A stretch of DNA of 63,677 nucleotides, the filler included, from Octopus bimaculoides (taxonomy: Eukaryota): NCBI RefSeq assembly GCF_001194135.2. It is 7 parts of 7 records of this genome, joined end to end, with 100 filler letters (N's around TTAATTAATTAA, not from the genome) between each part and the next. Parts side by side here need not be neighbours in the genome. Positions count along the whole stretch, not along the records: positions 1 to 24,182 come from NC_069002.1; 6 more parts are not named here. The stretch is one strand, 5' to 3'. The translations under genes and the position numbers were made by a program. This document shows positions 3,561 through 28,327 of this stretch, piece by piece (position 1 is the stretch's first letter; each line of letters opens with the position of its first letter). The notes under the pieces are model-generated. The model was not told the origin of the DNA, ran no database searches, and saw only the letters and a list, made by a program, of their open reading frames with translations.

Positions 3561-4529
3561 TTTGTAATAAATATCAGTTGTGATTGTGCTGTTATTTTTA
3601 ATGATGTGGATTAAAAAATATCTTTAACATATGAATATAAACAAATTACAGAAGACTCCCACCGATTAAGGTAAAAACGATCGAAACCAAGTAAGTTTGA
3701 TCACTCATAAAACTATTACATGTAAACCACAAGCTAATTGGTTAAAATAAAGGTGGGGTCAGTAATACCGTTATGTCCGGCAAACAGCGACGTTTAAGAT
3801 TGGTTAAAACTGTATTCCAAATGTTCGGCTTGTTGGAGCCTTCTAAGAAGTACAGAAAGGAAGAAGTCAGGCATTCTACTACAGTTGTGAAGGACTCACT
3901 TATCAGTTAAATACATTTTGAAATCTGATGATTACTATGAATGTATAAAAGCGCTAATTGAACTTTATGAACATTACAAAATAGTTTTTTAATGTTTCTG
4001 CTTCTATGTATTTAAATGTTATAAATATAGAACTTGGAGAATATTCTTTTTTTTTTACAATAATATAGTGTGACACTGCAATGTAAATTCTTACCATCCA
4101 TATCGATAACTTAAGGGGAAACACCACAGCGAAGAACGAAGCACTGAGATTTTGTTACCGTTCAATAAAACAAAGAGCACAGCGAAAAACGAAGCACTAA
4201 GTATTTGTGAGGCTTTAATAAATTTATTTCATTGGAATTTTATTAAAATTTGACGTATTAATAGCATAAATATATTAGATATCAAATACGTTGGTCGTAT
4301 TAATTTAGGTTTGTTAGAAAACTCATAGTTGTAGATTATGGTCTACAGATTTTCTCTTCTTTTACCATTTCCGTTCTTGGTGCAACAAACGTGAATTTCT
4401 TTCCAGGATAAATTACAAAATCAAACTTTTGTTCGTTAATATTTTATATTTCATTATGTCTCTTGATGTTTATTCATAGCTTTTCTACTGTTATAGGATT
4501 TGACGATTGGTTAATTTTCAAAATTGAAA

Positions 4530-4574
<45 letters not shown>

Positions 4575-4818
4575 GAAGAGGTAGATGAGGAGGAGGAGGA
4601 GGAGGAGGAGGTAGAAAAGCACAGCAGCATTATCAGCAACAACACTTGTTGATGTTCTTGTTGTAGTTGATTGTACTTTTGCTGTTTGCTTTGTTTTTCT
4701 CCTTTTGCTTTTGCTCCTTTGCTTTGTTTGTCTGCATTTCTTCTCATCGATTTTCCCCATTGTATAAAAAACAATCTGACGTATGACATTTATCCACAAG
4801 ATTCACCAGAGCAGAACG

Positions 4819-5044
4819 TCAATAAGATGGTAAATTTACAATAAAAATCAGAAAAGCGATTACAGTTTGGTGTATACCGTTATGAGCCATGTGGATCGTA
4901 TCTTTTGAACTACAACGGCATTTAAGTAATATTCTACATACACATTTCAAACCCGGGCAGCAGCGAAAGGATGTTGGACGCCCGCTACCGTCACAGAACA
5001 GTTCGTTACATTTAGGATTAGGTTTATTTCTCTTAAACTTGTTA
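4819..5044 (-). CDS. Paralog A, last coding exon: KR site, 8-Cys agatoxin-like/ICK peptide and hydrophobic tail
   Basis: Acceptor ttcctcctatattctgtatttgcag| at 5045-5046. The exon (phase 2) reads (S)NKFKRNKPNPKCNELFCDGSGRPTSFRCCPGLKCVCRILLKCRCSSKDTIHMAHNGIHQTVIAFLIFIVNLPSY*, with TGA at 4821-4819. It is homologous to 23532-23742, with the same stop position. Confidence 0.85.
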
Positions 5045-7010: not shown

Positions 7011-7899
7011 AATACGAATAGTAATATTAGTAAAAGTAATTGTAATATTAGATGCAATAGTTGAATTTGTGTATATTGATGACTTTTGCGCGTTGCTGCT
7101 AAAGCTGAATAGATTTAATGCTGTATAATAGTGAACCCGCCAGATTCCTCTAGGCTTGTCAATCATCTGAGGAATGATACCCATCCTCTATACTTACGAC
7201 ACAAGTTGAATGTCAGTATAATATTAAAAGGGAGGTCAGGATAGAGACTACAGTCTGGATTATGCCATTATTCATCACATGAATTATATTTTGTAAATTA
7301 CAGCAGCAGTCATGCTTTATACTTTTACAATTCCATGTAAAACCTGAACATCAACGACGGCGAGGTTTTAAAGTTTGTATACATCGAAAAACACCCAAAG
7401 ATCGTGGTCCTGCTGATGTCTACAGTTATTGACCAAAAGTCATCAACATTTCAGACACTTAACGATCATATAATTCAATTCCATGGCGTCAACAATTAAA
7501 TGCCCCTGGAGTACAAAAGATCAAGCATGAAGAACGGAATGTGACATATAGAAAACAACACGTGGGTCTCAAAAGTGAAGGATAAAAAGGACGAGTTATG
7601 GGGAGAGCACGAACATAAATTACCTGTATCTGTATACAAGGAAAGCCTTTGTGCTATACGACAGAATTAAAGATGTATAACGCTAATAGGACTTGGGGAA
7701 GTCAAGCGAGATTATGACTGGACAAACGGACAACTATATAAGACGGAAAGTTTAAAGTGATTTAGCCATGAGGAGATAAATTTTCAGTTTCTGATATGTC
7801 ACCTCTGGAAGGTTGAGAGAAGAGTTGGAGGACGAAAGGGAGAAAAGTATTGTGTGCTCTACATTTGAGCCATTGACAGCAACTGATAGAGGACGCAAA

Positions 7900-8832: not shown

Positions 8833-8893
8833 CTGTGAGTCATGTTACTCAAACTTACATAATCTCCTATACGTTGATGGAAAGGAGCGACAT
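8833..8893 (-). CDS. Paralog A, propeptide exon (61 nt, phase 1 to phase 2)
   Basis: ttttaatatctctttcag|ATGTCGCT...ACTCACAG|gtaagaac reads (D)VAPFHQRIGDYVSLSNMTH(S). It has the same length and splice sites as 21348-21408. Confidence 0.85.
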
Positions 8894-9654: not shown

Positions 9655-9718
9655 CTTGTTTAACCGAGAGTGTGTATGAGATGAATACAGAAAACAATAG
9701 GACACTGATTCCCTTCAT
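9655..9718 (-). CDS. Paralog A, signal-peptide exon
   Basis: ctatcatcag|gtgcgttATG...AAACAAG|gtaagt reads MKGISVLLFSVFISYTLSVKQ. It has a hydrophobic core, a T-L-S (-3,-1) cleavage site and a phase-1 donor. Confidence 0.88.
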
Positions 9719-10758: not shown

Positions 10759-12200
10759 GCATGTACATTGATATAAATGAGGAGACTCCCCTCAGTCATC
10801 TGTTTGTTGTTTACACACCCGTCTTCGTCTTTTGTTATTTTGTAAATTCTTAATATATATATCTATGTGTGTACATATCTAAGTATGTATATATCTATGT
10901 ATNNNNNNNNNNNNNNNNNNNNNNNNNNNNNNNNNNNNNNNNNNNNNNNNNNNNNNNNNNNNNNNNNNNNNNNNNNNNNNNNNNNNNNNNNNNNNNNNNN
11001 NNNNNNNNNNNNNNNNNNNNNNNNNNNNNNNNNNNNNNNNNNNNNNNNNNNNNNNNNNNNNNNNNNNNNNNNNNNNNNNNNNNNNNNNNNNNNNNNNNNN
11101 NNNNNNNNNNNNNNNNNNNNNNNNNNNNNNNNNNNNNNNNNNNNNNNNNNNNNNNNNNNNNNNNNNNNNNNNNNNNNNNNNNNNNNNNNNNNNNNNNNNN
11201 NNNNNNNNNNNNNNNNNNNNNNNNNNNNNNNNNNNNNNNNNNNNNNNNNNNNNNNNNNNNNNNNNNNNNNNNNNNNNNNNNNNNNNNNNNNNNNNNNNNN
11301 NNNNNNNNNNNNNNNNNNNNNNNNNNNNNNNNNNNNNNNNNNNNNNNNNNNNNNNNNNNNNNNNNNNNNNNNNNNNNNNNNNNNNNNNNNNNNNNNNNNN
11401 NNNNNNNNNNNNNNNNNNNNNNNNNNNNNNNNNNNNNNNNNNNNNNNNNNATATATATATATATATAAATAAACAATATTATTAAAATTAATAATAATAT
11501 CTTCGAAAATATATGCCAACACAACATTATCAAGGTTATCCTAATTGGGGGACTTCCAACAGAACATCTGAAAAATATTTTAGCTCTTCATAAACGCTAA
11601 CAAAAAATAACACCGAAATCAAATTCAGCTTGAGACTCTTATCAATTCAACCAATATATCGATTCCAAAAATCGCTGCATATTCCAAATCGTTGCTTAAA
11701 TTCAGGTTATTTCTGCTCTAGCAGACATATTATCAAAGACATTAAATTATCATTTCATCATTTAGTAATAGAGCTAATTGCAACAATAGTTATAAGTTCT
11801 AATGCAAATTCTTGATAAAGTGGGAAAATGAGAACGTTTTTTAAGAACTATTGAGAAACATAAAGCCGTAATATCCAACAGTATTATTTTCATTTGTTTC
11901 TTAACAACTAATTTGCATTAACCAAAGAACAAAGTCTAGAAGCGCTGGAGTTTATCCGAAAATTACGGAGTAAATTTATGCATATTCTCCAAATACAATC
12001 AATGAGTTGTAAAGCGAAAATTTGTAAATCATTGCGGGTCTTTCTCAGTTTGAGGTTCTTGGGCTGCACACAGGCAACAAACAGCCTAAGCTTATAAACA
12101 CCCATTCTACTTCTAAAAAGATCATCATTACCATAACACTCTATATAATGTTACTACTAATTTACATACACCTACAATGAATAATTCAAAGGTTACATAC

Positions 12201-14867: not shown

Positions 14868-15613
14868 CATATGTGTGTATGANNNNNNNNNNNNNNNNNN
14901 NNNNNNNNNNNNNNNNNNNNNNNNNNNNNNNNNNNNNNNNNNNNNNNNNNNNNNNNNNNNNNNNNNNNNNNNNNNNNNNNNNNNNNNNNNNNNNNNNNNN
15001 NNNNNNNNNNNNNNNNNNNNNNNNNNNNNNNNNNNNNNNNNNNNNNNNNNNNNNNNNNNNNNNNNNNNNNNNNNNNNNNNNNNNNNNNNNNNNNNNNNNN
15101 NNNNNNNNNNNNNNNNNNNNNNNNNNNNNNNNNNNNNNNNNNNNNNNNNNNNNNNNNNNNNNNNNNNNNNNNNNNNNNNNNNNNNNNNNNNNNNNNNNNN
15201 NNNNNNNNNNNNNNNNNNNNNNNNNNNNNNNNNNNNNNNNNNNNNNNNNNNNNNNNNNNNNNNNNNNNNNNNNNNNNNNNNNNNNNNNNNNNNNNNNNNN
15301 NNNNNNNNNNNNNNNNNNNNNNNNNNNNNNNNNNNNNNNNNNNNNNNNNNNNNNNNNNNNNNNNNNNNNNNNNNNNNNNNNNNNNNNNNNNNNNNNNNNN
15401 NNNNNNNNNNNNNNNNNNNNNNNNNNNNNNNNNNNNNNNNNNNNNNNNNNNNNNNNNNNNNNNNNNNNNNNNNNNNNNNNNNNNNNNNNNNNNNNNNNNN
15501 NNNNNNNNNNNNNNNNNNNNNNNNNNNNNNNNNNNNNNNNNNNNNNNNNNNNNNNNNNNNNNNNNNNNNNNNNNNNNNNNNNNNNNNNNNNNNNNNGTAT
15601 AAATCATGCCATT

Positions 15614-15893: not shown

Positions 15894-16561
15894 GTATGTA
15901 ACATTTAAATTATTCATTGTGGCTGTATGTGATTCAGTAATAACAATAGACAGAGTATGTTATGGTAATGATGATGGTGGTAGTGGTAGAGCTTAATCCG
16001 TCTGTTGCCTGTTGAGATCTGCAAAGAGAGAGGATAACCGGAATGATTTACAAATTTTCACTTTACATCTCATCGATTGTATTTGATGAAAGTGAATCAG
16101 TTGATCCCTTAATTTTTGCATGAAGTCGAGCTTCTGTGATTTTTGTTTTATAATTAATGTAAATCGTTTGCTAAGAAACAAATGAACATATTTTGGCATA
16201 TTGATTCTTTAACTAGTTTCTCCTTGCCGTGATTAGTAGCTGAATAAAATAAATAGAGGGGCCATTAAATTAAAACTCATACGTAATATGCTCTTTCAGA
16301 AAGTATTGTATTTGGAAGATGTTGATTACATAATTTTCGGTGTAAGGATCGAACGGCACATATGTTTAACAGCAAACAATTATGTTTATTCAGGTATGGT
16401 GTAAGATACGAGTGCAACAATAATTAATTATACAGTGAATTGAGAAGGAAAGACTGATTTTGGTTATAGAAAACAGAGAAAATACTTTTGACTGTACATT
16501 CTGACGTAGAACACTCTGTCAAATGCAAAGTGACAAGCTTTACATATTTGTTTGCGACAGA

Positions 16562-16607
<46 letters not shown>

Positions 16608-16950
16608 TAGAAGTCAGATAACCTTGAAGTAAGAACATTTCATTCACTGTTAACAGTATGGAGAATATTTACGGACAAATGCTTCGAAGACGTCATCTTC
16701 ACCTAAATTATATATTTACGTTAGTACTTCTGGTGTAATTAAATTTACATTAGTAGTATTGGTGCAATTAAATTAGCCATATTACTTATTGTTTAAATGG
16801 TAAATCTTGGATTTTTAGTGAAATAGATTTGAACAGCTAAGAGAATAACTGTTACTTAAATTTTAGCTGTAAACCTTTGTTTCTTTGTAAGAAAAAAGCT
16901 TCTGTTTTTAATGAGTTTCGTTGTTATATTTCTCTATCATCAGGTGCGTG

Positions 16951-17014
16951 ATGAAAGGCATCAGTGTCCTATTGTTTTGTGTATTCATCTCATACACACT
17001 CTCGGATAAACAAA
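16951..17014 (+). pseudogene. Orphan signal-peptide exon (unit B): truncated duplicate, or alternative first coding exon of paralog C
   Basis: ctatcatcag|gtgcgtgATG...AAACAAA|gtaagt reads MKGISVLLFCVFISYTLSDKQ and matches the C exon at 63/64 nt. No propeptide or Cys exon was found between it and unit C. Confidence 0.7.
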
Positions 17015-17211
17015 GTAAGTAGAATTAGAAATTTCTTTTATTTTATAGTAATCTGAAATGTAGTGGGAGAAAAGGCGGAAAATAGAAAAGCGGAAAGAAG
17101 GACGACCACCAGCACCAGCAGCAGCAGCAACACCACCACCACCACCATCGCCACCGCCACTGCCACCGCCTCCGACGCCTCCGCCGCCTCCAACCTGTGA
17201 TGTTAGTCGGT

Positions 17212-17385
17212 ACTAAAAGTGACGTTCTGAGTTCAAATTCCGCCGAGGTCGACTTTGCCTTTCATCCTTTCGGGGTCGATAAATTAAGTCCCAGTTGCGT
17301 ACTGGGGTCGATATAATCGACTTAATCCGTTTGTCTGTCCTTGTTTGTCCTCTCTATGTTTAGGTCCCTATGGGCAATAAAGAAA
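17212..17385 (+). mobile_element. SINE with Nin/Deu-like core, 5' truncated
   Basis: gttctgagttcaaattccgccgaggtcgactttgcctttcatcctttcggggtcgataaattaag..., a sequence recurring many times in the window. Confidence 0.8.
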
Positions 17386-17560: not shown

Positions 17561-20549
17561 CTCCGCTCCTCCACTTCTTCATGGTGCCTATCTTCTCATA
17601 GATATTCTGTACCATCCAATACTCTGGAAGTGCCAAATCCTTTTAATGGTGTGTAAATAATGTGAATTTTTATGTTTCCACATGAATCAACGACCTTTTC
17701 AAAAACGAGAGGAGGTGTTAAAATCCGCTTACTCTTCTATTTTGCACGTTTCTTCTTGTTATTCCACTTTATCTTTCATCCTGGTTTATTGATACTAACG
17801 TCTAACGGTTGCAAAACACTTGTAATTCTGTAAAGAATTAACAGCTTTATCAATGCTGGTTATCGAATGTTATCAACAACGTTCTTCCGTTCTTCACTAA
17901 ATTGGTCCCAGATGAAGAAGTACTTTACTTTCTGTAGTTCATCAGATCGTTAAGTACCAATTACTGTCATCTATTTTCTATATCTATCTGCATCAATCCA
18001 ACCTTGCGCATGCATGGATGGCTTTGCTCTTTATTTCTCATTTGCTAGAGTTTCTGTATCAATAAACGTAAATACATCACAACCTAACTCAGTACTTACG
18101 TCATTCTTCTTTTCTTGAGGCGAGTGTTTCTCTTCGCTGCTTCTTTTCTTTCTCTGCCTTTTGTAGCCTTTCTTACCCCGATTTCTGATTAAGTACTGAT
18201 AATATTGTAAGCAAGCATCTTTAGTGGTATCTCAGTTCTCAATCCATCATGCAGAACTTATTGGAAATCTAATCGAAGCTCTGCTGCAAAGAGACGTTAC
18301 AGCCCAACTGTGATTATTCTAATGTCTTTAAATTAACGTCTTGAAGAAATCTGTAACCTAACTTCTTGATGCACGGCTAAAGAAATAAAATCTACATTTA
18401 CACGTAATATATGGAAAAATCCAGATTATATTTAAAAAAAGGATGCCGATTTTTACATAAGGTCGATTTTTTTTTATAGGAGTATATTTATTTCATATGT
18501 AAAGCTCAGATACAAAATATAAAGTGGTAATAAATAAAACATTATTGGTTATAAGACTTGAAGATCAGGGATAATCAGGATCTAAACCACAATTTGAACT
18601 TTGCACCTCTGAATCAATAGTAAGTTGGTGTGTAAAAAAGAACTTAAAAATTGTCTCCAATGATGAACATTGGCAGAACCGAGGACATAAATTCGATATA
18701 GTTTGAAATGGTGTTTTCTAATTGCTAATTCACACAGCTGTACAAACTGCGCAGCGATTTAGTAAATATTTTATCTCATAACATTAATCAAGTTGTTGAT
18801 GCTTATACATACATACATACATACATACATACATACATACATACATACATACATACATACATAAATATATGTATATATATATATATGTATATATATGTGT
18901 GTATATGCATATATATGTATGTGTGTGTGTGTATGTATGGATATATATATATATATATATATATANNNNNNNNNNNNNNNNNNNNNNNNNNNNNNNNNNN
19001 NNNNNNNNNNNNNNNNNNNNNNNNNNNNNNNNNNNNNNNNNNNNNNNNNNNNNNNNNNNNNNNNNNNNNNNNNNNNNNNNNNNNNNNNNNNNNNNNNNNN
19101 NNNNNNNNNNNNNNNNNNNNNNNNNNNNNNNNNNNNNNNNNNNNNNNNNNNNNNNNNNNNNNNNNNNNNNNNNNNNNNNNNNNNNNNNNNNNNNNNNNNN
19201 NNNNNNNNNNNNNNNNNNNNNNNNNNNNNNNNNNNNNNNNNNNNNNNNNNNNNNNNNNNNNNNNNNNNNNNNNNNNNNNNNNNNNNNNNNNNNNNNNNNN
19301 NNNNNNNNNNNNNNNNNNNNNNNNNNNNNNNNNNNNNNNNNNNNNNNNNNNNNNNNNNNNNTTATGCTGGATGTTTGTGTTATACATTTCTCATTAGTTT
19401 ACGAAAGATGTTCCCATTTTCTTATTTTATGTCGAAACATTCACATCCACCAAACTGCTGATCTTTGCAACAGTGCCTGACTGCCGTTCTTTGTTCCACA
19501 GAACACCATTTGACCAATTTTGCTATCAGTAGATCGCTGCTTGTATTGAGTTAACTCACCAATATTCTTTGTTTAGAATCGTGTGAATACATTCTGGTTC
19601 TGCTGTAGCTTTGTCATAGCAGTAAAGACAATGCGTTCTTCATATAGCGTTTTTAGTTGGTGTGTGTGTGTGTGTTTGTGGGTGTGTGTGTGTGTCTGTG
19701 TGTGTTTGGTAACAAGGCCATATCTAAATGATGAATGTAGAATCTTGAAGATATTTTTTGACAGTTACTGAATACTGTCCCATGTTTAGAGCAAAACCAA
19801 CATGCATAACCTTCTTCTGGGATGAGACGTATACTTGAAGTACTTCTTCATCGATTCTTCGCTTAGTTTCTCCTTGCCCAGATTAGTCGCTGACATCCCT
19901 AATAAATAAAAGCAATAGTAAGACCATTAATTAAAAGAAAGTGTAGTATTTAGAAAGATAACGATAATAAATTTCTGTGTGAGGATTATATGACACATGT
20001 ATTCAGCAGCAAGCAATTGTATTTAGTCAGGCATAGTGCTAGATTGTTGAATACCAGTGCAACAGTTAATACAATATACAGTGAAATGTGCAGGAAAGTT
20101 TGATTTTGCATAGAGAAAATAGTGAAAATACATTTGACTGAGTACATTTCACATAAATTGACAAACATCTCATAATTGTTTTGGTGCAGACATAAAAATA
20201 ATATAGCTATAAAAACTAGATATACTTGAAGTAAGAATATTTCATTCACTGTTAACAATATGGAGAATATTTACGGACAAACGCTTCGAATACGTCATCT
20301 TCACCTAAATTATATATTCACATTTGTACTATTTGTGTAATTAAATCTACATTAGTAGTATTGGTGCAATTAAATTAGCCATATTACAAATTGTTTAAAT
20401 GATAATGCTTCGATTTTTAGTGAAATAAATTTGAAATGCTAAAGATAATTGTTATCTACATTTCAGCTGTAGATCTTTGCTTTCTTGTAAGGAAAACGCT
20501 TTTGTATTAATGAGTCTCGTTGTTATATTTCTCTATCAATAGGCACGTG

Positions 20550-20613
20550 ATGAAAGGCATCAGTGTCCTATTGTTTTGTGTATTCATTTCATACACACTC
20601 TCGGATAAACAAA
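20550..20613 (+). CDS. Paralog C, signal-peptide exon
   Basis: ctatcaatag|gcacgtgATG...AAACAAA|gtaagt reads MKGISVLLFCVFISYTLSDKQ, with a phase-1 donor at 20614. Confidence 0.88.
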
Positions 20614-21347
20614 GTAAGTAAAATTAGAAATTTCTTTTATTTTAATTGTAATCTGAAATGTAGTGGGAGAAAAGGCGGAAAATAGAAAATCGGAAAGAAG
20701 GAAAATGAATAACGTTACTTCAGCGGTCTTTCGGGTGTTCACCATTTACATGCTTTTACAGCTTTTAAATAAATAACTCTATTTATCAACACAACGCATA
20801 GACCAAGTGTACGGGATTAATATTCTTCTATATAATATACAAATCGGGAAGAATTCTAGTGGTGTGCTCTAATCTATTACTCCTGTATATGATCAGAACG
20901 TAAAAAAACGTAAACGAAACGATACTAATTACATTACTCGTCGAGCTAACGATTCTGCCAGCTCTCCACCGCCGCCCTTAGAATTCTTAATTATTAAAAT
21001 AATTACAGAAGAGAATCAGCAAGTGCTATATATAATGTTTCATGTGTTTTTTGTTTGTTTTCTTGTCATTCCTTTTTATTGATTCATTGGTTTTTATCCC
21101 CTTTATGTATTAAAAATATCCATCACAACAGAGATCAGCCATATTAAGTGTCTGAGTGAGGAAATGTGAGTTCCAGTCTTCATGATCCTCCATATTATTT
21201 CAGATGATATCATAAATACAGTCTCCTCTATTCAATACATTATCCTGTATTTAATACATTATCCTCTATTGATACATTCTTCTCTAGTCAATGAATTATG
21301 TTGAGTGCTTTATTAAAATACCATATGTATTTTAATATTTCTTTCAG

Positions 21348-21408
21348 ATGTCGCTCCCTTCCATCAACAGACAGGAGCTTCTGTAGGTTTTCATGACATG
21401 ATTAAACG
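21348..21408 (+). CDS. Paralog C, propeptide exon (61 nt)
   Basis: tttaatatttctttcag|ATGTCGCT...ATTAAACG|gtaagaac reads (N)VAPFHQQTGASVGFHDMIK(R). The Arg codon CG|T spans the splice junction and completes a KR site. Confidence 0.87.
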
Positions 21409-21989
21409 GTAAGAACTACATATCTACATATGTTATCGAATTGATAGACAAGCAGCCGCTAGTAAGGTTTCATGGCTTGTGTCTATAGTAGAGAGGTCAT
21501 TAATATTGTCGCAATTCTATTCTTGAGACTCTTTCCTAATTATAGTTTCTGCGTAAAAGAAAATATGGAACTGGAAAATATCAAGTGAGACGATCGGAGA
21601 AAATTTTCACGAGTAAAAATTCAATAATATTTGTTTCTATTTTACCTAGAAAATTTATCAACAATTCATGGCTGTCTAGTTAAGAAGTGCGAGCGTTCAT
21701 TCCCTGAACGTATGTCTTCTGCTATACGCTCAGCCCGACCAATACCACCTGAATGAATGTGGTGGAGGAGAACTGAATGGAATTCTATAATATATATCTA
21801 CTATTGGGACCCGTCGAAATTCCACGGAATGGAAAAAGTTAAGAGGACCTATTTAAGAGAGAAAGGAAGATTTGCATTTTTATAGAATTCATAGTTTAGC
21901 TTTCTTTAAATATTCTTGACGTTTGTCTTCATCCATTTCCTCACGTCTTCGACTGCATTGTTTTTTACCTCTTTTCACCATATTTTCCC

Positions 21990-22108
21990 TTTTTTCCCTT
22001 CTGATCCGTGCTCAATGGCTGCCCATTCTTTTTTCCCTTCTGATCCGTGCTCAATGGCTGCCCATTCTTTTTTCCCTTCTGATCCGTGCTCAATGGCTGC
22101 CCATTCTT
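21990..22108. repeat. 39-bp minisatellite, 3 copies, in intron 2 of paralog C
   Basis: ctgatccgtgctcaatggctgcccattc recurs at 22001, 22040 and 22079. Confidence 0.9.
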
Positions 22109-22676
22109 TCCCGAGCAGCTTGCGACTGTATTTCCTGTGAATTCAGAATTTAGACTAAATTGACCTTTATAAGCAAATATCAAATTTTTAAGCGAGCAGA
22201 CGATAAATAACTACACTTACGCGATAAGCAATGGTCACTATGAGAAAAAANNNNNNNNNNNNNNNNNNNNNNNNNNNNNNNNNNNNNNNNNNNNNNNNNN
22301 NNNNNNNNNNNNNNNNNNNNNNNNNNNNNNNNNNNNNNNNNNNNNNNNNNNNNNNNNNNNNNNNNNNNNNNNNNNNNNNNNNNNNNNNNNNNNNNNNNNN
22401 NNNNNNNNNNNNNNNNNNNNNNNNNNNNNNNNNNNNNNNNNNNNNNNNNNNNNNNNNNNNNNNNNNNNNNNNNNNNNNNNNNNNNNNNNNNNNNNNNNNN
22501 NNNNNNNNNNNNNNNNNNNNNNACAGTCGGCGGGCGCTGGTGCCTCTCATTATTTGTTTCATCCTTATCACCCCCATCTCATTAATGTCCATGTCCAGCC
22601 CGCAGCTACTTTATTTCTGTCTGTCTTTGTCTGTCCCCTCTATGTAACGCCGTTAATGGCGAAATTTATTGAAATA

Positions 22677-22965
22677 AAGTAGCTTGGTTACCACAACCAC
22701 ATGCTTCCGGGTTCATCCCACTGCGTGGCACCTTGTGTAAATGTGTTCTACTATAGCCTCGGGTTGACCAAAGCCTTGTGAGTGGATTTGGTAGAAAGAA
22801 ACTGAAAGAAGCCTGTCGTATATATATATATATATGTATATATTGTCCTCCCAACATCGCTTGATAACCGATCCTGGTGTGTTTTCATCCCCGTAACGTA
22901 GCGGTTCGGCAAAAGATACAGATAGAATAAGTACTAGACTTACAAAGAATAAGTCCCGGGGTTGA
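22677..22965 (+). mobile_element. Composite SINE: tRNA-like head, internal (TA)n and conserved tail
   Basis: Head ccacatgcttccgggttcatcccactgcgtggcaccttg...gaaactgaaagaagcc, then (TA)n, then tail atcgcttgataaccgat...gcggttcggcaaaaga...gaataagtactag. Confidence 0.8.
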
Positions 22966-23029
22966 TTATTAACTGACATACATCAATACTCAACTTGTTA
23001 CCTCCCCTCTAACTATTCTTTGCTACTCT

Positions 23030-23232
23030 TTGCACAAGGCCCGAAATTTTGGGGGAGCGGTCCAGTCGATTAGATCGACCTCAGTACGCAACTGGTACTT
23101 AGTTTATCGACCCCGAAAGGATGAAAGGCAAAGTCGACCTCGGCGGAATTTGAACTCAGAACGTAGCGGCAGACGAAATACCTCTAAGCATTTCGCCCGG
23201 CGTGCTAACGATTCTGCCAGCTCACCGCCTTT
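23030..23232 (-). mobile_element. Nin/Deu-core SINE, near full length
   Basis: rc reads ggcggtgagctggcagaatcgttagcacgccgggcgaaatgcttag...gttcaaattccgccgaggtcgactttgcc..., with A- and B-box-like head motifs. Confidence 0.85.
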
Positions 23233-23282: not shown

Positions 23283-23476
23283 TAGCGAGTTGGCAGAAAC
23301 GTTAGCACCGCTACGTTCCGAGTTCAAATTCCGCCGAGGTCGACTTTGCCTTACATCCTTTCGGGGTCGATTAAATAAGTACCAGTTACGCACTGGGGTC
23401 GGTATAATCGACTTAATCCGTTTGTCTGTCCTTGTTTGTCCCCTCTATGTTTAGCCCCTTGTGGGCAATAAAGAAA
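23283..23476 (+). mobile_element. Nin/Deu-core SINE with an internal deletion, inverted relative to 23030-23232
   Basis: gcgagttggcagaaacgttagca[deletion]ccgctacgttccgagttcaaattccgccgaggtcgac...tgtgggcaataaagaaat. Confidence 0.85.
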
Positions 23477-23531: not shown

Positions 23532-23742
23532 TGACAAGCCCAAGGAAAGCGCTTGCTCAAAGGACGAGTGTTACCAATCTATGCCAAGCAAGTATTGTTG
23601 CGAAGGTTTGACATGTTCTTGCAGTCGCGAAGAAAAGAAATGCACGTGTAATTCACAAGATATCATCCATGGGACTCATAACAGTATACTCCAAAGTGTA
23701 ATCGCTGTTCTCATTTTCTTTGTGAATTTACCAACTTGTTGA
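23532..23742 (+). CDS. Paralog C, last coding exon: 8-Cys agatoxin-like/ICK peptide and hydrophobic tail
   Basis: tttcctacaatattctgtgtttacag|T GAC... reads DKPKESACSKDECYQSMPSKYCCEGLTCSCSREEKKCTCNSQDIIHGTHNSILQSVIAVLIFFVNLPTC*. The phase matches the upstream exon, and the spliced CDS is 336 nt (111 aa + stop). Confidence 0.88.
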
Positions 23743-24182
23743 TGTTCTGCTCCTGTGAATCTTGTGGATAAATGTCATCAGTCAGATTATTTTTACAGAA
23801 GGAGAAAAATCGATGAGATCACGAGGACAAAATATTGGATGTTTTAAATGAGAAGAATTTAGAATTTTAATATCACGCAGAAAGCGGAGGAGCCAGGCTA
23901 ACAGCAAAAATACACTCAACAACAAAAACATCGTTTTTCGCTGTGCTCTTTGTTTTATTGAACGGTAACAAAATCTCAGTGCTTCGTTCTTCGCTGTGGT
24001 GTTCGCCTTTAAGTTATGGATATGGTTGGTAAGAATTCACATTGCAGTGTCACACTATATTATTGTAAAAAAAAAAGAATATTCTCCGAGTTCTATTTTA
24101 TGAAATTTAAATAAAAAGAAACAGAAAAAAAATGAGAGATAAGAAATGAAAAGAGAGAAAAGAAAAAAGGTCAAGCAGTAGA

Positions 24183-26569: not shown

Positions 26570-26950
26570 GGCTGGCTGGTTGGCACTCCGTCGGTTACGA
26601 CGGCGAGGGTTCCAGTTGAACCGATCAACGGAACAGCCTGCTCGTGAAATTAACGCGCAAGTGGCTGAGCACTCCGTAGACACGTGTACCCTTAACGTAG
26701 TTCTCGGGGAGATTCAGCGTGACACAGAGTGTGACAAGGCTGGCCCTTTGAAATACAGGTACAACAGAAATAGGAAGAAAGAGTGAGAGAAAGTTATGGT
26801 GAAAAAGTACCGCAGGGTTCGCCACCATCCCCTGCCGGAGCCTCGTGGAACTTCAGGTGTTTCCGCTCAATAAACACTCACAATCGAAACCCTGATCATA
26901 CGACCAAGAGTCCGCTGCCCTAACCACTGGGCCATTGCGCCTCCACGAGT
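26570..26950 (-). mobile_element. Long (about 370 bp) tRNA-headed SINE
   Basis: Reverse complement aligns with 54320-54690 (aggctccggcaggggatggtggcgaaccctgc ... ggaaccctcg..cgtaa.cgacggagtgccaac). Confidence 0.8.
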
Positions 26951-28327
26951 GACGGCTATGCAAGTTATATATATCAAAGTCATAGAGTTTTAAGCTTTAC
27001 TTTAACTCTATCAGTCTCTAAATAATCTGGTTACATATTTTGGTAGTTAGGTGTGAGTATGAACCTGATATTCAAGACATTTATATAGTTTTTATTTATT
27101 ATCTATTTGGCCTAATTTTCAGTTTACCCTCCCATGTCTTTATACTCAAAACATATCAAACAAGGACACTATGAAATCAAAAACGGAAAACTGCATATAA
27201 GCGAAAAGTTAGACTAGAACATGGGAAATTGTTTCACTTCATTCTTAAACAGCAGCTTTGCGATGACAACTAGTTTTTGTGAATGTATGAGTAAGATATT
27301 CTTTTCTACTCTAGGCACAAGGTCCGAGATTTTGGTAGAAGCGGGGGGGCAGTCGATTAGATGGACCCCAGTACACAACTGGTACTTAATTTATCGACCC
27401 CTGAAAGGATGAAAGGCAAAGTCAACCTCGGCGGAATTTGAATTCAGAACGTAAAGACAGACAAAATAGTATGAGTAAGACGATACTAAGTAACTGACCC
27501 CCTCCAGTGCGCTCTAAATCCACTATTAAGTTATAGAAGCCAAGAACTAAAATGTTTGTTCTGAATGAATAGATCACACTCCGTTTTATAAAACTAGCTT
27601 TGTTAAATGAATAGAATGGAAAAGTTTTCCACCGAGTTTTTTTTTTTTTTTTTTACTTTCACATTCTTTTATTTACTTATTTTACCTCTGTATATATTTG
27701 ATTATACGAGTTTATATATAATGCGTTTGATTGTCCAAAGAAGTTTAATTACCCTAATATCATTATATTTTGTGTAAAAATGGGTTATTTTAATCGCGTC
27801 GTCGATGTATCTCTCAGTCAAATGTATCTGCATTTGTAATGTACTGTTGGAGAGCGACAGCTGGACGCTAACTGAGCTCAAACATATTCAATGGTAACAA
27901 TACGATAACCGTTGCTTTGCTAACGGTAAATGGTAAATCCCACCAGGTCTGTAGTGGTTACCGCTACAAGCGAAGCAGGGTCCACCTCTGGTGGTANNNN
28001 NNNNNNNNNNNNNNNNNNNNNNNNNNNNNNNNNNNNNNNNNNNNNNNNNNNNNNNNNNNNNNNNNNNNNNNNNNNNNNNNNNNNNNNNNNNNNNNNNNNN
28101 NNNNNNNNNNNNNNNNNNNNNNNNNNNNNNNNNNNNNNNNNNNNNNNNNNNNNNNNNNNNNNNNNNNNNNNNNNNNNNNNNNNNNNNNNNNNNNNNNNNN
28201 NNNNNNNNNNNNNNNNNNNNNNNNNNNNNNNNNNNNNNNNNNNNNNNNNNNNNNNNNNNNNNNNNNNNNNNNNNNNNNNNNNNNNNNNNNNNNNNNNNNN
28301 NNNNNNNNNNNNNNNNNNNNNNNNNNA

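Follow-up and report, generated by a model that had tools for sequence, protein, structure and literature searches.

To our knowledge, all membrane-tethered modulators with a toxin fold described from animals have the three-finger (Ly6) fold, and inhibitor cystine knot (ICK) toxins have been tethered only by engineering. Lynx1 is an endogenous modulator of nicotinic receptors tethered by glycosylphosphatidylinositol (GPI), and in engineered tethered toxins (T-toxins) conotoxins, bungarotoxins and other toxins are fused to a linker and the lynx1 GPI signal (PMC7056315). Among natural ICK-type peptides, the O-palmitoylated plectoxins (PLTX-II, delta/omega-PLTX-Pt1a) need a C-terminal lipid for activity, and the hydrophobic C-terminal tail of omega-agatoxin IV is essential for its activity (PMC3653879). 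The stretch of Octopus bimaculoides DNA analysed here, 63,677 nucleotides of assembly GCF_001194135.2 (the window), carries in its first part (positions 1 to 24,182, from NC_069002.1) two paralogous genes, A and B, which encode ICK-like domains followed by a hydrophobic tail. Their products are plausibly toxin-fold peptides with a C-terminus of the membrane-anchoring type, a view that the sequences partly support. They belong to a family of uncharacterised ICK-like genes in which the core is hypervariable, the exons for the mature peptide can alternate and the C-terminus carries an unusual hydrophobic extension.

Two knot genes with a hydrophobic tail

The 93-nt segment at the end of both reading frames is a translated C-terminal extension of the terminal exon in two head-to-head paralogs, and it begins directly behind the last Cys of the knot framework:

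23647-23649, + strand: last Cys codon of gene B
23650-23742, + strand: tail of gene B, 30 codons and TGA (codons 23650-23739, stop 23740-23742), NSQDIIHGTHNSILQSVIAVLIFFVNLPTC
4914-4912, - strand: last Cys codon of gene A
4819-4911, - strand: tail of gene A, 30 codons and TGA (codons 4911-4822, stop 4821-4819), SSKDTIHMAHNGIHQTVIAFLIFIVNLPSY

The + strand frame 23532-23742 translates as (S)DKPKESACSKDECYQSMPSKYCCEGLTCSCSREEKKCTC-NSQDIIHGTHNSILQSVIAVLIFFVNLPTC and a stop, and the - strand frame 5044-4819 as NKFKRNKPNPKCNELFCDGSGRPTSFRCCPGLKCVCRILLKCRC-SSKDTIHMAHNGIHQTVIAFLIFIVNLPSY and a stop. In B, the polar segment NSQDIIHGTHNSILQS leads to the hydrophobic VIAVLIFFVNL and the final residues PTC, while in A SSKDTIHMAHNGIHQT is followed by VIAFLIFIVNL and PSY. 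A sequence-only reading of the same DNA had described two knottins with hydrophobic tails of equal length; this observation is confirmed and extends to a gene family. Both frames run exactly 30 codons beyond the last framework Cys without insertions or deletions, both stops are TGA, and the 18 differences in 93 nucleotides that had been counted are correct. The coordinates 4819-4911 for the A tail, read from the - strand frame, are correct, and the start given for the B tail, 23649, is the third base of the last Cys codon. Two caveats of that reading also hold, as the hydrophobic run is short, with a core of 9-11 residues in A and B, and purifying selection is not evident between the two tails, for which the ratio of nonsynonymous to synonymous substitution rates (dN/dS) is 0.79 (Nei-Gojobori).

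The three-exon model of B is exactly NCBI XP_052831637.1 (uncharacterized protein LOC128250516 isoform X1, O. bimaculoides, 111 residues; P0001) and that of A is exactly LOC128250513 (116 residues). The coding exons of B are placed by tblastn at 20550-20613, 21348-21408 and 23532-23742, and those of A form a mirror image at 9718-9655, 8893-8833 and 5044-4819, so that the parts of the two genes, with their 3' untranslated regions (UTRs), are:

20550..20613, + strand: B exon 1, ATG and signal peptide MKGISVLLFCVFISYTLS DKQ, donor AAA/GTAAGT
21348..21408, + strand: B exon 2, propeptide (N)VAPFHQQTGASVGFHDMIK(R), donor ACG/GTAAGA
23532..23649, + strand: first part of B exon 3, KR processing site and 8-Cys ICK-like domain DKPKESACSKDECYQSMPSKYCCEGLTCSCSREEKKCTC
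23743..24115, + strand: B 3' UTR to AATAAA (24110-24115), with the family-specific block 23931-24127 within
9655..9718, - strand: A exon 1, signal peptide MKGISVLLFSVFISYTLS VKQ
8833..8893, - strand: A exon 2, propeptide (D)VAPFHQRIGDYVSLSNMTH(S)
4912..5044, - strand: first part of A exon 3, NKFKR site and 8-Cys domain NKPNPKCNELFCDGSGRPTSFRCCPGLKCVCRILLKCRC
3995..4818, - strand: A 3' UTR, with microsatellite expansions near 4520-4610 and the block 3995-4192

Both precursors have the same plan, in which the signal peptide MKGISVLLF(C/S)VFISYTLS is followed by a propeptide of about 24-29 residues up to the KR site, the 8-Cys domain and the tail. By inspection, the signal peptide MKGISVLLFCVFISYTLS is conserved in all members of the family; dN/dS in the signal exon is 0.17.

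Across 8 members, eight Cys and one Gly do not vary (C-x4-5-C-x8-10-CC-x-G-x2-C-x-C-x5-8-C-x-C). This is the knottin framework C-C-CC-C-C, to which one further C-x-C pair is added, and the domain is about 35-40 residues long. In the PDB, the sequences that match best all belong to ICK toxins of spiders with four disulfides (mu-agatoxin-I, purotoxin-1, delta-palutoxins and omega-agatoxin IVA/IVB; E-values 0.75-7). The AlphaFold2 model of the mature domain has a predicted local distance difference test score (pLDDT) of 71 and a hairpin at 26-31/36-41, and 13 of its top 14 Foldseek matches are ICK or closely related toxins (template-modelling score (TM) 0.43-0.62, probability up to 0.84, E-value at least 0.45); the full-length model is poor (pLDDT 54). 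Matches to curated toxin families (Pfam Toxin_7, E-value 0.61, and Toxin_9, E-value 3.3, for A, none for B) and to PDB profiles (E-value at least 0.75) are not significant. The ICK label proposed from the sequence is reasonable: the C-C-CC-C-C-C-C framework, which does not vary, speaks for it, and so do the closest matches in sequence and in fold, which are to ICK toxins although none is statistically significant. "ICK-like" is the best label, not a proven one.

As judged from its sequences, the family is a set of about a dozen octopus-restricted, tandemly expanded genes for signal-pro-ICK-like peptides. A HMMER scan of 1.84 billion cluster representatives finds seven related octopus proteins, and the family proteins are O. 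bimaculoides LOC128250513, -514, -516 (X1, X2), -517, -536 and -541 together with two O. vulgaris models; tick and aphid repeat proteins matched in the scan are taken as spurious. Word-index protein searches give no relatives beyond O. bimaculoides, no Pfam family is matched by the octopus proteins, and no full-tail ortholog is annotated in other species according to three protein searches and the HMMER scan of the 1.84 billion representatives. Nothing relevant on octopus or cephalopod ICK peptides, on GPI-anchored knottins or on the LOC identifiers was found in the searchable literature.

At least 10 tailed exon-3 copies are found on this chromosome in a scan of the fetched loci. The main tail type, with the consensus SSQNMIHVANNGILQTVIAFLIFLVNLPSY and a stop, is present in seven copies and is always 30 codons long. 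A second type of 28 codons, which ends in ...NNG(M/I)IQTV(A/V)SIL(S/T)SL(A/L)ILY and a stop, is present in two copies, namely the intact paralog P0005 and a decayed copy in the window:

7213..7383, - strand: decayed third exon-3 copy in intron 2 of A, with the second-type open tail NLQNIIHVMNNGIIQTVVSILTSLLILY and a stop

In this decayed copy the knot is interrupted by an in-frame stop and its Cys framework is broken, and the tail, of the P0005 type, still has an open frame. Elsewhere (L002) two intact exon-3 copies lie about 750 bp apart (21905-22120, 22872-23087), and both cases together indicate that the family duplicates exon 3 in place. The copy at L002 21905-22120 is unannotated, as is another at 26886-27101.

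In O. vulgaris, the model P0010 has ...CRC-SSQNMIHVANN, which is identical to the main consensus at 11 of 11 positions over the first 11 tail residues. As P0010 is chimeric, with several paralogs strung together over 121 kb, it is rejected as evidence of splicing after ...HVANN. Distant relatives without a tail end 2-20 residues past the knot, such as an O. vulgaris copy that ends in CRCKQ and a stop, and a 131-residue gene of the same cluster that ends in CRCHSLSLSQTALEGCRKRK and a stop. Another O. vulgaris model, P0008 (L006 14864-14986, OX597817.1), exits the knot exon early (...CCNGYN/YLDSL...), and the genomic frame at its locus encodes a complete tail-less knot, AACTMEACGEGIVLPCCNGYNCKCDKKPTDCRCKQ and a stop; the model is probably mis-spliced.

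Two of the NCBI gene models need separate mention. P0005 is named isoform X2 of LOC128250516, but as a tail-splice variant it is rejected: it is a paralog in its own right, located 65 kb upstream, and has three exons and a tail of its own. NCBI merges it with B (X1), with which it has no coding exon in common, and three family genes of opposite strand lie between them (CM046622.1, 29.184-29.255 Mb). LOC128250541 X2 (P0013) and X3 (P0002) have exons 1-2 in common and different knot exons (L005 17145-17963, - strand), which look from their arrangement like mutually exclusive "cassettes" of mature peptides.

The knot and the tail differ in the way they evolve. In blastn, A and B cease to be similar at the first framework region; similarity returns at 23638, at the last C-x-C, from where it runs through the tail into the UTR. 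The proportions of nonsynonymous (pN) and synonymous (pS) differences between the paralogs are 0.44 and 0.49 in the knot core, and 0.17 and 0.13 in the tail. Both values in the core exceed those of the tail and the signal exon on its flanks by a factor of 3-4, with the boundary at the last Cys (23532-23649, 4912-5044), although the alignment of the core loops is uncertain and core pS may be inflated. This pattern resembles the focal hyperdivergence of conotoxins, or a homogenisation of the flanks. Since the hypervariability ends exactly at the last Cys, the tail behaves as a component of the conserved scaffold for processing or targeting, like the signal peptide, the propeptide and the UTRs, and not as part of the hypervariable binding domain or pharmacophore.

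Comparison of the two tail types reaches further back (pS about 0.5). Over tail positions 1-16, P0005 has a dN/dS of 0.18 against the main consensus (Fisher p 0.012) and of 0.30 against the real copy P0011 (p 0.09), and over positions 17-27 the values against the main type are 0.65-0.87 with hydrophobicity retained; the counts are small and the use of a consensus lowers dN. A constrained polar linker followed by a hydrophobic end that is free in sequence would be the pattern predicted by a linker plus anchor signal.

A candidate attachment signal and its alternatives

By inference, GPI attachment through the tail is the most likely single mechanism, and we give it somewhat less than an even chance. 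After entry into the endoplasmic reticulum (ER), the hydrophobic end VIAxLIFxVNL with its three last residues would act as a GPI-attachment-type signal, the tail would be cut at or near the conserved Asn-small motif of positions 10-12 (N-N-G in the consensus), and the knot with a polar linker of about 10 residues, SSQNxIHVxN, would be left lipid-tethered on the outer face of the producing cell.

GPI signals have a linker of about 11 residues, small residues from omega-1 to omega+2, a spacer from omega+3 to omega+9 and a hydrophobic tail from omega+10, with C, D, G, N or S as the usual residue at omega (PMC2571997). In general outline the octopus precursors agree with this description, with a signal peptide, a small disulfide-rich ectodomain and a C-terminal hydrophobic stretch plus three residues. 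The run of V, I, L, F, A and M residues in A and B is 9 residues long, and as the proteins end just 3 residues beyond the hydrophobic core, they have no cytosolic domain. The mean Kyte-Doolittle value of the last 20 residues is 1.15 in A, 1.65 in B and 1.06-2.2 family-wide, and the hydrophobicity of A and B is within the range of true GPI signals such as that of CD59. With a cut-off of a run of at least 9 such residues and a mean Kyte-Doolittle value of at least 1.15 over the last 20 residues, comparably hydrophobic C-terminal ends are present in 8 of the 415 ends of six-frame open reading frames (ORFs) in the window, A and B included; among random open frames of 30 codons with the base composition of the locality, about 0.08% have such an end.

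The residues around the putative cleavage site give an ambiguous picture. At tail position 12 every copy has G, S or A, and at position 11 there is Asn in 9 of 11 copies. Position 10 is occupied by N or D in five copies, as well as in the consensus and the O. vulgaris fragment. Five copies have N-x-G or D-N-A at positions 10-12, and the N-N-G motif of the family consensus is ancestral-looking. With omega at 10/11, a linker is present and is constrained (dN/dS 0.18). Of the GPI anchor proposed by the sequence-only reading, the general layout of a GPI proprotein stands, and the GPI-specific features are not established.

A number of observations weigh against such a signal. The omega region of A and B is the weakest in the family: at position 10, A, B and P0002 have His, P0011 has Thr and L2b has Phe, and the sole triple in A and B with S, N, G, A, D or C at omega and G, A, S or T at omega+2 is C-(S/N)-S, starting from the last knot Cys. 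At this Cys the spacing fits, yet the residue would be disulfide-bonded in the knot and no linker precedes it, while omega at 10/11 gives a propeptide of 19-20 residues with a spacer of about 4 and a core of 9-11. Selection tests among the seven main-type copies, whose divergence is too small to be informative, give a dN/dS of 1.28 for the tail, summed over pairs, with 1.71 for its polar and 0.77 for its hydrophobic half, variable sites by codon position of 8/8/5 in the polar and 3/3/5 in the hydrophobic half, core replacements that keep hydrophobicity in 6 of 8 cases against 58% expected, and a P of 0.17-0.27 for the lack of premature stops. The main-type tails are indistinguishable from neutral drift and no purifying selection is detectable in them. 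Two copies are frameshifted near the end, which is still hydrophobic (...VNLHLIDVLFL or ...VNFNLIDVLFL and a stop). In the exact-protein index, P0001 and P0012 are matched by the genome contig only and by no transcript. In LOC128250541 isoform X2 (P0013), which ends ...NAILQT/CHIMVSIKKTVMAELAVDDRRYG, the hydrophobic part is spliced out.

Among the alternatives, the one that survives best is still rather unlikely: a C-terminal pro-region or tail of a secreted peptide, without GPI, which would be removed by an endopeptidase or kept as a lipophilic tail. In the first case, for example, an Asn-specific, legumain-type cut after the Asn of N-(G/S/A)-(I/L/M) would follow a transient phase of membrane binding or sorting, and the knot set free by it would be soluble and extended by 11 residues. 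In the second, the lipophilic tail would aid the free peptide to partition into target membranes, as in omega-agatoxin IV or the acylated plectoxins. The signal-pro(KR)-mature plan with a hypervariable core is typical of secreted toxin, antimicrobial and signalling peptides, and A and B have only a poor version of the canonical GPI omega site. N11 and the small position 12, followed by I, L or M, are the best conserved polar positions, and Asn-small-hydrophobic is the type of site cut by asparaginyl endopeptidases. The nearest sequence matches include omega-agatoxin IVA/IVB, in which a hydrophobic C-terminal tail is essential for activity, and plectoxins require a C-terminal palmitate (PMC3653879). 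Yet an extension of 30 residues with an aliphatic core of 9-11 greatly exceeds the agatoxin tail in length and hydrophobicity and would leave a free 70-residue peptide poorly soluble, the tail does not have the hypervariability of the binding domain, and no dibasic or amidation signal lies ahead of it. We know of no legumain-type processing of secreted animal knottins.

The drift-like statistics of the main type would also suit a young, effectively neutral extension without function, inherited through recent expansion of the family and maybe a burden on some copies, an explanation that we regard as improbable. Besides a main-type dN/dS of about 1, an even distribution of polar-half sites (8, 8, 5) and non-significant ORF survival, it accounts for the tail identity between A and B (81%), which does not exceed that of the adjacent UTR (about 85% over 76 nt) and is lower than that of the distal UTR block (93%), for the tail-less relatives, the two frameshifted copies and one pseudo-exon, and it agrees with the tendency of AT-rich DNA to encode I, F, L and N. 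Such a hydrophobic end is, however, rare by chance (the 0.08% of random open frames), and the polar segment is constrained across tail types (dN/dS 0.18-0.30) and identical over 11 O. vulgaris residues. Moreover, a hydrophobic C-terminus on a secretory protein is not silent, but decides on retention, anchoring or degradation.

That the hydrophobic part is untranslated in the main transcripts of A and B, through an intron from Q-(S/T)/GTAA to the distal ttgcag/TGTCAC, is very unlikely. The precursors would then end in ...ILQS-CHTILL (B) or ...IHQT-CHTILL (A) and a stop, the hydrophobic tail being replaced by CHTILL. P0013 uses exactly the homologous sites, and its junction runs from CAAACT/GTAAGC, inside the tail at the Q-T/V codons, to ttgcag/TGTCAC 582 nt downstream. 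This isoform shows that the family is able to make tail-less products from tailed genes. The homologous acceptor lies in the family-specific distal UTR block of A, B, P0006 and P0011:

24047/24048, + strand: acceptor-like site ttgcag/TGTCAC of B; weak donor AGT/GTAATC at 23697/23698
4076/4075, - strand: acceptor-like site of A; weak donor ACT/GTAATC at 4864/4863

The acceptor and the short frame CH(T/I)(I/A)LL with its stop are kept in A, B and P0011, and the block that holds the acceptor-like site and the poly(A) signal (23931-24127 against 3995-4192) is 93% identical between A and B, above the coding tail (81%) and the proximal UTR. On the other side, the donor in A and B is a weak GTAATC that has T at -1 and lacks G at +5, compared with GTAAGT and GTAAGA of the actual introns of both genes, the tract before their acceptor is purine-rich, and the splicing paralog has improved versions of both sites. 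The donor position reads CTA in L2b, GTAGCC in P0005 and GTAGTC in C, the downstream frame is not kept in P0006 or L5_153, and NCBI lists no tail-skipping isoform for A or B. The AATAAA is about 370 nt downstream of the B stop. An internal donor AAC R/GTATAC, which had been suggested within the tail, is rejected, as its GT is not kept in the intact paralog P0005 (GGC) or in L5_153 (GCT).

A conventional transmembrane anchor, giving a type I membrane protein with a 3-residue cytoplasmic end, is scarcely credible: the hydrophobic core is near the C-terminus and AlphaFold makes residues 87-106 of B one helix of low confidence, but the uninterrupted run of 9 residues (11 with N-L), flanked by Q, T, N and P, is short of the 18 or more of a type I helix, only three uncharged residues and no basic ones follow the core, and a rough, hand-estimated apparent free energy of insertion over 19 residues is strongly positive.

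Surroundings of the two genes

The window maps, at these genes, to CM046622.1, about 29.231-29.256 Mb. The head-to-head arrangement of A and B is that of a large inverted duplication, in which 8805-10481 matches 21436-19796, 4742-4923 matches 23818-23638 and 3995-4192 matches 24127-23931. The last of these, the distal 3' UTR block, was considered as a transposable element and rejected, because it is found only downstream of family genes in the approximately 180 kb of fetched loci. The window also has a direct duplication of about 0.9 kb (16200-17102 against 19850-20702), and the following elements:

16951..17014, + strand: orphan duplicate of the signal-peptide exon, 1 nt (synonymous) from B exon 1
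17222-17385, 23313-23476 and 23064-23169 (inverted): copies of a short interspersed repeat

The orphan signal exon lies inside the 0.9-kb duplication and has an intact ATG and a GTAAGT donor, with no exon 2 or 3 of its own recognised, and may be an alternative first exon or an orphan. The short interspersed repeat, which has a tRNA-like segment GAGTTCAAATTCCGCCGAGGTCG, is present in three copies that are 92-96% identical, one of which stops about 55 bp upstream of B exon 3. Rfam and tRNA (ARAGORN) scans of the window, including this tRNA-like repeat, are empty. Simple sequences are found as (GTA)n and (GGA)n microsatellite expansions in the A 3' UTR (4520-4610), as three perfect 39-bp tandem units in intron 2 of B (21989-22109), and as AT/GT-rich repeats that flank five assembly gaps (1599-2191, 10903-11450, 14883-15596, 18966-19361, 22251-22522).

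Comparison with described systems

If the tails of A and B do act as attachment signals, the closest functional counterparts would be the prototoxins of the lynx1/Ly6-uPAR group, which includes quiver/sleepless, with their secreted SLURP relatives. The prototoxins likewise have a small, disulfide-rich ectodomain of toxin fold, a signal peptide, a C-terminal hydrophobic signal and no cytosolic domain, and tail-less relatives exist beside tailed ones in Ly6/SLURP as in the octopus family. The fold of the lynx1 family is three-finger, in contrast to the ICK-like C-C-CC-C-C-C-C of the octopus domain, there is no homology between them, and GPI is demonstrated for lynx1 while the octopus tail is a candidate only. 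The octopus proteins have no Pfam UPAR_LY6 match, no three-finger fold match and a Cys framework different from that of the LU domain, which has 8-10 Cys and a C-terminal CCxxxxCN, so the relation to Ly6 is one of analogy. By this analogy, the difference between tailed and tail-less octopus relatives is a possible split into tethered and secreted forms, as that of lynx and SLURP.

T-toxins have the identical order of signal peptide, toxin knot, polar linker and hydrophobic GPI-type end, and the octopus linker has about 10 residues before N-N-G. They differ in being artificial, with long Gly-Asn linkers and a proven signal, whereas the octopus arrangement is natural, with a short linker and a putative signal.

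Spider four-disulfide ICK toxins have the motif CC-G-x-C-x-C-x(5-7)-C-x-C in common with the octopus domain, and fold matches to them have TM-scores of 0.5-0.6. The omega-agatoxin tail differs from the octopus tail in its length of about 10 residues and in being part of the mature venom peptide, with no aliphatic block like a membrane span. Plectoxins show that the combination of a lipid and a knot works in nature, although their lipid is a palmitate ester on a secreted venom peptide, not GPI on the producing cell, and their precursor is without a hydrophobic tail. Conotoxin-type families likewise have a conserved prepro region, a hyperdivergent Cys core in which synonymous and nonsynonymous differences are both raised, and tandem paralogs, to which the octopus family adds alternative mature-peptide exons; no homology to conotoxins is detected. 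We know of no conotoxin precursor that ends in a 30-residue hydrophobic extension.

The wider proposal is tentative, and we hold it to be possible but doubtful. Octopods would have natural GPI-tethered ICK "prototoxins", lineage-specific and rapidly diversifying, which are held at the surface by a short conserved linker and a lipid anchor and act in cis or at cell contact on ion channels or receptors, while their tail-less or tail-spliced relatives are soluble. Even without GPI, a new octopus-restricted family of ICK-like peptides is of value in its own right. If the proposal is true, these genes would provide ready-made, cell-autonomous modulators of channels or receptors in an animal whose nervous and chemotactile systems are a subject of study, and they would represent in nature what tethered toxins are by engineering. 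The "prototoxin" solution would then have arisen independently on a second scaffold, as an ICK counterpart of lynx1 and SLURP.

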